This document shows, piece by piece, positions 16,594 through 51,447 of a stretch of 64,000 nucleotides of DNA. The stretch is from Oikopleura dioica (Eukaryota > Animalia > Chordata). Numbering within the stretch: position 1 is the stretch's first letter; each line of letters starts with the position of its first letter. The notes under the pieces were generated by a model, which saw only the letters and a list, made by a program, of their open reading frames with translations, was not told the origin of the DNA and searched no databases. A program made the translations under genes and the position numbers. The stretch is taken from the NCBI GenBank assembly GCA_907165135.1, contig OU015568.1, positions 15,697,208 through 15,761,207 on the forward strand, written 5' to 3'.

Positions 16594-18428
16594 ATGAAAA
16601 AAGGCAACTTTCATCAATACATTTGGAACCGAAAAGACATCCAAAAAGTGGACATCTGGGCTCGGCAACCTGTGTAGAAAACCTGAGTCAGGGTCTATAG
16701 ATCTAAAATGAAAAGTCGCGTAGCGGCTTTTTTATAAACGAAGCCGCTTTGCTCAGAAATCAATTGCTAGTCAAGGAAGTTATATCTGCGAAGCCGCTTC
16801 GCGGCTACGTCTTTAAAAAAGCCGCTACGCGGCTTTTCATTTTAGATCTGTAGACCCTGACTCAGGTTTTCTACACAGGTTGCTAAGCCAAGGTGGACAT
16901 TGTTGGTGAACTCGCTCAACGAGGCTTTTTGCGCGAAATTGCGGAGAACATCTTTAGCTACTTGGAATTTTCGGATTTGTTGATTGTCGGGCAGGTATCG
17001 AAACAGTGGGCGGATATAAATATCTCAAGAAGAATGTGGAAGGAAGGGCTATTGAGAACGATATCAGTCGTAAGTGCTCTTGTTTTAATAAATATTACGA
17101 AAGTGAATATTCTCCTGCGCTTATAATTATCCAAAACTAAGGATGAAAAGTGGAGGAAGCAAGTGGAACGGTTGAAGATTTGCGACTATGACGAACTTCA
17201 ATCGAATAATCTCTTAGGTAACTAATAAAATAAATAGTGCTCCAGAAGAGTTATGCCATAGAAGAATCGTCATAATCATTAGATTGCGAGAAAATTGGAA
17301 GAAGGATCAATGGATATTTTCGAAAGCAACGACAGAACTGGGGGCAACGCCCTCAAAGCGTTCAGGATGAGTTGTCCCATATTAATAATATGATATTATC
17401 TCCTTTGAAGAAAAGAACCCTCGAAAGTTGATGTTTTGAACTCTTGATGTGCCTGAAAATAACTCTGGAGAAAGACAGTAAATTTAGGAAAAGGGAACAC
17501 CATCAAACCACTTGGAATCGACGCTTCTGATGATTATATTGCGGTTATTGTCGATAGATTTCATGTAGGAAGCGCTTGAAAAGACTGAAAATCGGTATTA
17601 TCTTCTTAATTTTGTAAGCGTAAAGCAGTTATTCTCATTTTCGCCCGTTCTGACGGCCAATTCATCTGCAGATTGACCGATTGCCCGGGCGTTAAATTCG
17701 TTCAAGTTCATAAATCAACTTGTGTCGCTTCCAATTCTTCCGGAAAAACGATTTTCATTTGGCTCGGTTTGAAATTTCACTTGCAGATAGTGATAAGCCA
17801 AAAATTTAAAACCGATGGTAAGAACTTGCCGAGTGGACTGTTACTCAATCAAATCCGAGTTCACGAGCCGATAATGAGTTTGTCCTGCTTTTGGGACATG
17901 GAAAAGATGTTTGTTGGGACGATTTCGTCGCTTATTTCTTATGAGATCAGAAATGATGGCGAATATTTCGATGAAAACTGTCTTTTGGAACTCGGAAAAG
18001 GAATCACGAAAATAACTGCAAATGATAAATCGCTGTTTTACGGGACTTTTGACGGTTATCTTGGAATGCTGGACGTTAGAACGTTGGCAAAGAAGGCTGG
18101 TTTCACGAAGAAAGGATACAAGATCTCTTCCTTGATTTCAAACGATGGTTTTCTCGTCGCACAATTTGAAACTGGGCTGGAGATGGACAAATACATCTAT
18201 ATTTGGAAGATCGATGACACTTCTGATCGTCCATTTATATCGCCACTTGCGATTATTCCGAACTCAAAAAGTGAGCCGACTTTTTCGAATGGGGGAGCAG
18301 TCGTTTTCAATGGAGACGAAATCTGTGTCGGCGGACAGAATTTAGTTACTATTTATGAATGGATTGAATTCCCTTTACCAGCCCTAACCCTAACGCTAAC
18401 GCTAACCCTAATCAACCCTACCCCTTAG
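16594..18428 (+). CDS. F-box protein with divergent WD40-like C-terminus (beta-TrCP-like F-box); multi-exon; 3' end uncertain
   Basis: VDIVGELAQRGFLREIAENIFSYLEFSDLLIVGQVSKQW resembles the beta-TrCP F-box. Beta-rich repeats follow (LFYGTFDGYLGMLD, IYIWKID). ATG at 16594 is in frame once 16648-16892 is removed. Confidence 0.7.
16656..16892. mobile_element. Foldback MITE of the CTG...CAG family, 237 bp, inserted in F-box coding sequence and forming an intron
   Basis: Inverted arms of about 90 bp (CTGGGCTCGGCAACCTGTGTAGAAAACCTGAGTCAGGGTCT...). 8-bp TSD GTGGACAT at 16648-16655 and 16893-16900. Confidence 0.92.
18383..18427 (+). repeat. Degenerate telomere-like (CCCTAA/CGCTAA) tract
   Basis: CCCTAACCCTAACGCTAACGCTAACCCTAATCAACCCTACCCC. 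Shorter tracts occur near 29867-29879 and 62157-62182. Confidence 0.7.
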
Positions 18429-46966: not shown

Positions 46967-47461
46967 TTCTTGTATTTTTGGAGAATGATATGAAGTTTTT
47001 TCAGGTCTCTATTTTATTATCGATATTCTCGAAAATAAAAAAAAAAATACGCTACTGTCCAAAATATCGAAGGTAGTAAAATAGCAAGATATCGATTTTT
47101 TCTCAATAAGATTATGCGTGGCGAATTTGGATATTTATCGGTCAAAAATTTTTGTTCTCCAGCGCCGTTATCAATTTGATTGATGCTCATCAAATGCTGA
47201 TGTAATCAGTTCACAGCTCTTGATCTCGAAGGCGCAGTTTTCAAGTTGAAATGAAACGCTGTCGGCAGAGATCAAGGCTTCAAATAGAAAGAATTAACTA
47301 AAGGAGTATCAGCAATTCTAACCAAAAGCCTTCCTTATTTCTTGATGCTTATAAAGACTCCGGTGGCTTTATCGATAATAAATTTATTTGTGATATTTAT
47401 CTGTGGCAGTGTGAAACTTTTTGAAAGAAAATTTCATGTAAATTGTTCTAATGCACTGTCT

Positions 47462-50400
47462 TCAAACAATCGCGTAGTTGGCGTAGACTTCCTTTCGGAC
47501 GATGAAGTATTCTTCGGAAAGAGCTCCTTCGACTTGAATCACACCATTCGCACTCTTTTTGATGCTCACTTTTTCGTTGCAAACCAAATTTCCTCCTGAA
47601 ATCCATTTTAAAAAGTAGCCAAGCTATGATTATCCAAGGATTATCCAAGGATAATCAAGCCTTACCGATAAACTCTGCCTGCATGCCCATTTCGATTAGT
47701 TTTGACTTGAGATCTGTAAGCTTTGTATCGTTTATGAAGATAGTGTCGTGTCCACTCGAGTAGGTATTTGAAACAGGCTACAAAACAGTTAAGAACTGAC
47801 GCTTTCTCTCTTTTCTATACCTGTAAAGTCGGAATATCATCGATTTCCAGCTTCCTCGGCTCATCCGACTCTTCCTGCAGCTCAAGTCGACCGCCAAAGT
47901 AGTCAACTCTTCCTCGAATCCTCGCGACTTCGATATCTTTGCTTCCAACACGAACAAAATTCAAGTTGCTCAAAAGAGAATCCTTCAGTTTCAGCTGGTA
48001 GATGAAGCTTTCCTTCGTCGCGTCGATTAATTCGTGATGCTAGAAAAGTGCCCATGACATTCTGATAAATAGAAGAAAGAACTTACCACTGGCATATGAA
48101 TTTTTATTCCCTGGACTCTTGATTTGATATCTTTGATGAGCTTGTCCTTGTACTTTTCTTTCGTGCGGATGAGGATCAATTCTTTGGGCTTGATAGTCGA
48201 CAGGATTTGAAGTTGAGATTCGCCGTCGACTCGTCCTTCGAAATCGATGAATTCGATGTTGCATCTTATTGAAACCTGAAGTTTATTATGAATTATCGGA
48301 TGATAAAGGTAAATGTTACCTGTTCTCGTGATTTGATACACTTGGTCGGCATTTTTTCCTCTTCCTCGGGGGTATCGGCTCTTTTCTTTTTCTTATGATT
48401 AGGATTGTGTCGCCCAAAAGTAACAGACTGTTCTCTTCCAGCTAAATCGTCATTTGAAGGATCACTTTCTGGAATAAGCTCGTGCGTTTTGTAGTCGTCT
48501 GGATTGATAATTTCGCCGTAATCGTCCCATTTAATTCGATTCTCGTTGAAAGGAAACATTGGGAACTTCTCCTTTCGCGCTTTTTTGAAGAAACCGCCTT
48601 CTTTCTTCTGCTGATGATGGGGCATCATGATGTCGTAAATTCGCTTTTTCTGAAATAATCCGTCAAGAAAGGCCTCAAAGAAGAAATTTTACCTTGACGA
48701 TCTTTTTCTTGGCAACAACGTTTTCATTTTCATTATCCGATTCGTCGCTCGACTCTTCCTGCAATCGCTTGATGAGTTTGGCGTGCTTTTCTTGGGGTGC
48801 GCGTCTTTTCTGGCATTTTGAGAAATGCGTCCTTTCTGGCATCGCGTTCTTTCTGGCAGTCGCGTCTTTTCTGGCACTGGAGTCTGATTCATTTTACTCT
48901 GATATTGAGTAGGGTCAACCAAATTTAATATGCTGATATTAATAGCATAAAATCTTTACCTTCAATAGCAACTTGCCACAGGCAAAACTTTTTTATTTGA
49001 TTTAAAAATTTTTATTATCAAAGAAAAAAGTGCTGATAACTTACATAACTTAAAAGATTTTCAGCATTACTTATGATGATCTCATAATTTTTCATTCGAT
49101 TCTAGTGCCAAGAAATTGGTCCTCTCAATCATATTCAAAACTACGGGTACTTCTTCTTGAAGATAATTTCAGAAGGAAATAACAGTTGATTAGATTTGGT
49201 AGACCCTACTTGATATCAGAATTCAATGAATCAGACTTCAGTGCCAGAAAAGACGCGACTGCCAGAAAGAACGCGATGCCAGAAAAGACGCATTTCTCAA
49301 AAATGCCAGAAAAAACGCGCACCCCTTTTCTTGCTCTCTTTGCTTCTCAAATTCTTCCAATTCCGGTCCAACCAGAGGCACCCGCTGCTTCATTTCCAGC
49401 GTAATCGAACTCATGCCTTCGTTTTCGATGATTTTTCGACAAAGAGAGCCTTTGACAGATTTGCTAGACATAATTATCGCGTTTTTCGGGTGACCAGCCA
49501 TCATCGTGAACAGTTCTCGCGAGAAACCAGTGTCCATGTCCATCGGCGTCGCAAGAACTACTTTTGGCTCTGGGATACGAGCAACTTCTTCGATGGACAT
49601 TCTCAATTTCAGCCGCGTAAGGTCGAAGACATTCTCTCTTTTGTGGGTAAACCTGGAGATGATTTTCTCGCTCATCCATTCGATCATTCCTTTCGCTGCT
49701 TCAATCATGCTCGGAGCTACGTTTGAGATCATGACCAGATTGACGCGGGAAAGGTTGAATCGCTCATCGTTCCAGAGTCCTTCCAAGAGAAGAGCCATTT
49801 CTAGCGCTCGGCCGGCGGTATCTGTCGTAATCAGGACGTTTCCGCCCTTGGTAGTGGTGTTTTGAATCCGTCGAACAAGGCGTTCTGTTCTTGTAGCTCG
49901 TCTTTCTTGCTGATAGCCGTAAGTCGAGCAGTCAGTAATCATCAGTGTCGGTTTGTCAAAAGCATCGAGCTGGATTCCGTTCAGATGCGTTTCTCTTTTG
50001 TGATTCGCGTCGACGCAGTAGACGAACTGTTCTTCCTCGTCCTTCACGATCTTCCAGCTGGTTCCGCCGATCATGTGGCCAGCTTGAACTGGAACAATTT
50101 GTAAGCCATAATCTTGCCCTCGTACAGCTTCCGTTTGATTGTGCTTGAGTTGAATTGCCCGGTCGAAAACGGCATCTACGTCGTCGAGGGTGAACATTTC
50201 AAAGTCCTCAACTGCGTTTCTCGCCAAAACCAAGTCGTAGAGAAACATTTGACCCATTTTACAGGTAGGCATCGTCATGTAAACCGGACAAGTGATTCCC
50301 AACTTGCCCAAGTAAGGGAGCATTCCACAGTGAAGAAGATCAGGATGAGAAATTAAAATTGCGTCGATTTGTCGCCCATGTCGCTTTAGTCCATCTTTAA

Positions 50401-50615
50401 ATTCTTGTTAAATTATGTGATGAGTATGGAAGGGCTTACCGATGATTTTTTCGTGGTGCTGCTCGGCCCAGCCGCAGTCGAGAAGAAATTTGAAATCGTC
50501 GATTTGAAGCAAGTGACAGTGAGGAGCTTCATCGTCAAATCCAGATAATGACTGGAAAATTATTTAGCATTTCTATTGAGCTGATTTTTACCTGAAACTT
50601 GACGATAGACGTCAT
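47462..50615 (-). CDS. CPSF2: Cleavage and polyadenylation specificity factor subunit 2 (CPSF100)
   Basis: MTSIVKF; FLLDCGW; [12 protein letters not shown]; [13 protein letters not shown]; SSDESD; [10 protein letters not shown]; [12 protein letters not shown]; C-terminus [13 protein letters not shown]...YAIV. TTCAG acceptor 2 nt before the ATG. Confidence 0.95.
48795..49324. mobile_element. Mutator-like foldback MITE, 530 bp, inserted in a CPSF2 exon and forming a GG-AG intron
   Basis: TIRs of about 135 bp starting GGGTGCGCG, each with four GCGTYYTTTCTGGCA-like subrepeats. Perfect 9-bp TSD CTTTTCTTG at 48786-48794 and 49325-49333. Confidence 0.93.
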
Positions 50616-50856
50616 CCCTGAAGATTACTCCTTCTTCCTTATTTTCTCTTTTCAATTTTTCAGGCTTTGACAAATTCTCCTTCTCGTATTGAGCCAATCG
50701 CAGCGCGCGCTTTTTTCAAGAAGCGTTCATTGTAGCGTTGATCTTCTGAAGGAGCACGCTTACTTAGACTTTTCACTCACTTGGACTCACTGAAGACTCA
50801 CAATTGAAAATTAAGGGCTTGCAAAAGTTATTATTATTAAAAAATTTTAATGCATC

Positions 50857-51447
50857 GACGATTTTCAATAAGGATTTCTGAGTGAAATCCTTACCCCCTT
50901 TTTATTTGCTCATTGAAAAGAGCGTAAAAAGTTATCCCATATTCACCCGGAAAATGATGAAATTTTGGAAAAATGATGTGATGGCACGTGACTGAAGTCC
51001 CAAAAAACTCAAACTTTCCCGCTCGATCATTTTCGACTCGTCTGAGCTAATAAGACTTGTAATAGCTCAAAATGATCGTCTCTGCGAGCTCTTGGTGGAC
51101 ATCAAGTTTTCATCCCTTTTAAACCCTTTTTTTAAATTTCTATTTTTCGAGCAATAGATGAAGGGATGAAAAAGGGTTGAAGAGCGATGAAAATAAGAAG
51201 CCCGCCAAGAGCTCGCCAAGACAATCATTTTGAGCTATTACAAGCTCTTGTATCTCAGACGAGTCGAAAATGCCCGGGCGGGAAAGTTTTGGTACTTTTG
51301 GGACTTCAGTCATGTGCCATGACGCTATTTCTTCGGAAATCTCATCCTTTTCCGGGCAAATCTGCGATAACTTTTTACGCTCTTTTCAATGAGCGAATAA
51401 AAAAGGGGGGTCAGGATTTCACTCAGAAATCCTTATTGAAAATCGTC
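50857..51447. mobile_element. Foldback MITE, 591 bp, almost entirely inverted arms
   Basis: GACGATTTTCAATAAGGATTTCTGAGTGAAATCCT...AGGATTTCACTCAGAAATCCTTATTGAAAATCGTC, flanked by ATC on both sides. Confidence 0.88.

Follow-up and report, generated by a model that had tools for sequence, protein, structure and literature searches.

A segregating Mutator-type insertion in Oikopleura dioica CPSF2 as a candidate nascent GG-AG intron

A non-autonomous Mutator-type MITE interrupts a coding exon of the CPSF2 gene in the OKI2018_I69 assembly of Oikopleura dioica. We tentatively favour, at somewhat less than even confidence, the view that this is a young segregating insertion tolerated through exact GG-AG splicing, that is, a nascent intron. 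Unless a contig is named, positions are those of the window, by which we mean the whole 64,000-nucleotide stretch of DNA that was analysed.

The element, its family and the gene it interrupts

The features of the locus are the following.

47460–50620 (approximate ends), minus strand: CPSF2 gene, nine coding segments
49325–50394, minus strand: CPSF2 exon 3, 356 open codons, 87% identical to ortholog residues 47–402
48693–48785, minus strand: CPSF2 exon 4, 93 nt, from ortholog residue 403, with the SSDESD motif
48795–49324, minus strand: non-autonomous Mutator-type MITE, 530 bp, inside the CPSF2 coding exon
49178–49324, minus strand: 5′ TIR arm (in gene sense), with 16–18 bp subterminal repeats
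49324 and 49322, minus strand: candidate donors GG and GT, respectively, in the 5′ TIR arm
48795–48940, minus strand: 3′ TIR arm, containing an alternative AG acceptor at 48806–48805
49325–49333, minus strand: first TSD copy, CAAGAAAAG, at the end of exon 3, providing an exonic AG before the GG donor
48786–48794, minus strand: second TSD copy, CAAGAAAAG, whose final AG is the acceptor of the exact cut

Read on the minus strand from 49324 to 48795, the MITE starts with GGGTGCGCG and ends with CGCGCACCC. Its TIR arms are about 140–145 bp long and 90% complementary. Sister copies set the boundary at GGG with a 9-bp TSD and rule out an alternative boundary with a GGGG-starting TIR and a 7-bp TSD. 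The sequence-only reading had described a Mutator-like MITE in a coding exon with a perfect 9-bp TSD. Both parts of this description were confirmed, by CAAGAAAAG on either side and by the long TIRs, the TSD length, the lack of coding capacity and the presence of dispersed similar copies. If the element is retained in the transcript, the first in-frame stop is met at element codon 29. In the predicted fold the TIRs form one hairpin (−287 kcal/mol, z −29), in which the donor and any branch point are buried. The CPSF2 copy carries 13 private substitutions, which may reflect an unsampled donor copy instead of age.

MULEs are defined by long TIRs with 8–11 bp TSDs (PMC6446971). The CPSF2 MITE resembles them in both respects and in its G-rich termini and low target specificity, but has no transposase. 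Weak matches to PF10551 (the MULE domain) were found in genome ORFs of 541–596 aa at G000:C1:5821086, C5:10116858 and C2:8822519; MULE transposases are seldom reported in chordates (PMC6446971). The family is a low-copy one. Besides four full sister copies (91–95%), it has two members that contain nested inserts, and the GGGTGCGCG ends also occur in a related subfamily of 540–560 bp. Neither copy with nested inserts is an autonomous partner. The 7-kb copy (L033:512-7674, G000:C4:6073011-6080173) is split by a nested LTR element, whose ORFs are gag-like, protease/RT and integrase-like, and the 2.4-kb copy (L034:518-2928, G000:C4:7295817-7298227), flanked by a perfect 9-bp TSD, contains non-coding nested inserts and no long ORF. 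Two unrelated elements were also noted in the window, a foldback element of 590 bp close to CPSF2 on its upstream side (50857–51447, terminal arms 96% complementary) and a 260-bp inverted-repeat element at 16644–16904 (104-nt arms, 88%).

Among 13 other copies the TSD is a perfect 9-bp repeat in 11, a 9-bp repeat with one mismatch in one and 11 bp long in one. These copies were screened for exonic location by open frames only, and no convincing reading frame across the empty site was found in any of the 13. The CPSF2 copy, with its AG-ended TSD, is the one clearly exonic copy of the 14 screened. Target duplications of the others show no bias to AG, which ends the TSD, on either strand, in 1/13, about the chance level. 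With no AG bias and no other clearly exonic copy in the screen, this is not an introner family, and the MITE is at best introner-like at the CPSF2 site. Since an exon target would end in AG by chance in 7.3% of cases (calculated for CPSF2 exons), the AG end of the sole exonic copy gives modest support to a splicing filter, support that is weakened by the fact that the finding was picked for its AG geometry.

CPSF2 exons 3–9 are open, and the flanking introns are GT-AG introns of 40–70 nt. Exon 3 is up to ~50% identical to CPSF2 proteins. Searches of protein and representative-sequence collections returned no Oikopleura CPSF2 entry. The ortholog reference was JGI contig Ga0314683_10027251, an intron-free cDNA of full length that belongs to another lineage; the exons are 62–91% identical to it, exon by exon. 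The end of exon 3 corresponds to ortholog residue 402 and the start of exon 4 to residue 403, with a gap of 0. The linker in this region is 19 residues long in O. dioica and 19–30 in other homologues.

The assembly (64,281,565 bases, 19 contigs) contains no second complete CPSF2. An intact CPSF2 elsewhere had been named as a finding that would speak against splicing, and only two incomplete fragments were found, neither of which qualifies. The fragment on chr2 is the 3′ half only and has a premature stop; the one on chr1 (L068:5211-6443, G000:C4:4634211-4635443) is more decayed, at 85%, with many replacements and deletions. Changes on the lineage of the filled haplotype comprise 15 synonymous and 2 replacement ones; the corresponding counts are 13:10 in one paralogous fragment and 9:18 in a second. 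Judged by these changes, the filled haplotype is otherwise intact and without decay, as a young insertion would likewise be.

Possible ways of splicing the element out

Combinations of G-starting donors and AG acceptors were enumerated. The original sequence and the ortholog length are restored only by donor GG at 49324 together with acceptor AG at 48786, which skips 539 nt. The proposal that this cut restores the frame into the SSDESD exon held, ortholog residues 402 and 403 being brought together, and so did the observation that the GT at +3 used with either TSD AG shifts the frame. It had further been claimed that the element can be removed exactly only as a GG-AG intron. This cut is indeed the only exact one, and other in-frame cuts also exist. 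One pair omitted from the sequence-only reading, GT at 49322 and AG at 48806–48805, is in frame and stop-free and adds 21 nt, or seven residues, GRAPQEK. GG at 49324 with AG at 48759 is likewise in frame and stop-free and removes 27 nt (nine residues). Joining the GG to the acceptor of the next intron would skip the 93-nt exon 4 in frame, as follows from the exon length, and further in-frame G-starting donors are present.

Introns with non-canonical ends make up 11% of introns in the OKI2018_I69 assembly (PMC8008620). GA donors of O. dioica come after an exonic AG (PMC7072748), GA and GG donors of a copepod require one (PMC5714493), and A at +3 is typical of both donor types (PMC5714493, PMC7072748). 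The candidate GG donor is directly preceded by exonic AAAG, in agreement with the exonic AG requirement; its +3 position is G, not the typical A. A GT lies 2 nt away, and the match to U1, counted by eye, is about equal for both. The exact acceptor has no T at positions −20 to −3, compared to 6–10 in the other introns of the gene that were checked (the acceptor of the first intron was printed two bases off), and 5 nt upstream of it is another AG that would compete. The T-free acceptor, competing AG, G at +3, nearby GT and buried donor count against exact splicing, while the zero-gain colinearity with the ortholog and the intact filled haplotype count for it.

Filled and empty alleles in sequenced DNA

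Four runs, X1, X2, X4 and X5, were compared. All four are DNA, for their contigs cross constitutive introns and skip none of them. The exact empty site, with 48785 joined to 49325, was found in 4/4 DNA runs, which is what the sequence-only reading had proposed to look for in other samples. No homozygous-filled sample was seen among the four, and no filled junction was evident in contigs of X2, X4 and X5, where X2 and X5 have reference-like flanks and a filled junction may have been pruned. These results were counted against the exact-intron reading. Of the earlier claim of a recent intron gain, the recent insertion stands, and the intron itself is a candidate.

Run X1 shares identical stretches of 205 and 408 bp with the reference, and one of its contigs has the 9-bp deletion present in the chr1 fragment of the assembly. 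From these identities X1 is probably the source male, an Okinawan O. dioica. The depth of the X1 empty-site contig is 44.9, compared to ~43–46 for the reference haplotype (~45 per haplotype). Contig sides were simulated with k=31 on the assumption of a variant at 48783, the third base of a His codon, where contig ends suggest that filled and empty alleles differ. Further variants of the filled haplotype are at 49379, 49409 and 48560. In the simulation a side of 30 was produced only by a filled/empty genotype, whereas empty/empty genotypes gave 33 if the chr2 copy was present and 36 if it was absent. The observed sides were 30 in X1, 33 in X2 and X5, and 36 in X4, and this geometry suggests that the chr2 element is absent or different in X4. 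Read alleles common to the chr2 copy (19/25) were dropped, since the list of best-supported sites favours shared ones. With the empty allele at one-haplotype depth, the insertion looks heterozygous in X1, so the essential nature of CPSF2 is no proof of splicing, and in the probable source male the intron would be nascent, not fixed.

A second-haplotype contig of X1 (49826–50051, depth 32) leaves exon 3 at 50051 and continues into 205 unlike letters, and no second contig covers 50088–50199 in X1. The break may be an artefact of amplification or come from a paralogous piece; if instead the empty chromosome truly carries a lesion there, the filled allele would be the sole working CPSF2 in X1.

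The chr2 fragment lies in a non-autonomous TIR element of 1970 bp (L066:5302-7271, G000:C5:8997302-8999271), which carries the 3′ half of CPSF2 as a genomic copy at 89.7% identity. The 5′ end of the captured piece is at 48792, inside the TSD of the MITE. A breakpoint that near the TSD is expected by chance in ~2% of cases (a rough count, for four breakpoints over 3.2 kb), which suggests a transposase-made break at the CPSF2 TSD site during the chr2 capture. The chr2 copy looks more diverged than the CPSF2 alleles. Either the site received two hits, or the insertion has an age greater than its apparent rarity implies.

Competing readings and related systems

Exact removal would proceed as follows. 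A MULE transposase would have cut a 9-bp target with AG at its end. Of the two TSD copies, the first would then supply the exonic AG needed by non-canonical donors and the second the 3′ AG, and the TIR would supply the GG donor. Binding of U1 would need to precede transcription of the 3′ arm, which closes the stem. A wider proposal, that the MITE is exactly spliced despite its ~140-bp stem and purine-rich acceptor, that it forms a segregating intron allele and that breakage of the site also seeded a Pack-type capture, is put forward with more reserve, as a conjecture that we consider rather less than evenly probable.

The insertion could instead be a null or strongly hypomorphic allele, with the MITE retained or mis-spliced and survival in heterozygotes only, which we regard as a real though doubtful alternative. 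The heterozygous pattern of X1, with a joint depth of one haplotype and the filled/empty side length, speaks for it, as do the lack of an evident filled junction in X2, X4 and X5, the poor acceptor and the buried donor. Such an allele may be sheltered by linkage to the sex-specific region, which is ~1.35 Mb from it along the PAR long arm: the CPSF2 site is at 15.75 of 17.09 Mb of contig C1, taken as the pseudo-autosomal scaffold on the grounds that C4 and C5 have the sizes of chr1 and chr2, and the sex-specific regions are assumed to be joined to this arm (PMC8008620). A null allele leaves the AG-ended TSD as a 7% coincidence and sits less easily with the lack of decay on the filled haplotype (which youth would equally produce) and with the possible lesion at 50051 on the other allele. 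Where populations are large, a null allele of an essential gene should not last long, so that sampled exonic insertions would be enriched for tolerated ones; our lean to splicing rests on this population-genetic inference, which makes splicing plausible.

Imprecise in-frame splicing, with seven residues gained, nine lost or exon 4 skipped, appears unlikely. All three cuts are in frame and stop-free, the longer linker would stay within the natural range, and the GT and GG donors are about equally good matches to U1. However, the acceptor of the +21 cut sits within the stem, the conserved SSDESD region is damaged or deleted in the products of the −27 cut and of the skip, and the AG-ended TSD is left unexplained by every one of these options. 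We consider it very improbable that the assembly misplaced the MITE into CPSF2. The empty site in all runs and the absence of the copy's private bases from run contigs would fit such an error, but the perfect TSD is built from the exon's own sequence, the X1 contig geometry requires a filled junction and lower-depth bubbles are dropped from contigs.

O. dioica gains introns fast. Transposon-derived introns have been listed for this species (PMC3443670), and in Fritillaria they are the rule (PMC11282704). Larvacean introns (O. dioica, PMC3443670; Fritillaria borealis, PMC11282704, PMC13326754) are, like the CPSF2 candidate, lineage-specific, non-canonical and of MITE-like origin. They are supported by RNA, whereas the CPSF2 case is a candidate for which an exact empty allele is still segregating and GG-AG ends would be required; F. 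borealis has AG-AC and AG-AT intron ends and a duplicated U2AF (PMC11282704, PMC13326754). GA- and GG-donor introns of the copepod Eurytemora affinis (PMC5714493) share the exonic AG before GG and a recent origin, but nearly always have A at +3, where the CPSF2 candidate has G. The insertion had also been called an introner. As in introners of Micromonas and Aureococcus (PMC9860276, PMC11282704), a non-autonomous transposon with TIRs and TSDs offers an element-derived donor and a TSD-derived acceptor, here as candidate sites, and this exact-removal geometry, built from element and TSD bases, is a part of the claim that stands. So is the absence from the orthologous site that introners show in relatives, given the exact empty site in the four DNA runs. 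A family bias to genes and AG targets does not. Introners form families with at least five intron-forming copies and are usually gene-enriched, whereas 1/14 screened copies of the CPSF2 MITE family is clearly exonic, its TSDs are not AG-biased, its TIRs are ~140 bp long and splicing is predicted from geometry. The main text of Gozashti 2022 does not mention Oikopleura.

The CPSF2 case, in which a Mutator-type insertion of exact GG-AG geometry is segregating, is a new candidate in a field where transposon-derived introns are already known. To our knowledge, an origin of introns from transposons has been proposed before, and there are few cases in which both alleles still coexist. Junction reads by themselves are no proof of such introns, and with an empty allele present, an exact-junction RNA read is informative only with a haplotype marker. 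Filled and empty alleles are apparently present in one animal, with a putative linked variant 3 nt from the junction, which makes an allele-specific test possible. The locus thus addresses whether a relaxed 5′ splice site can neutralise a Mutator insertion. If splicing fails, it is ordinary heterozygous transposon load; if exact splicing is true, an essential chordate gene would here be segregating for the presence or absence of an intron.
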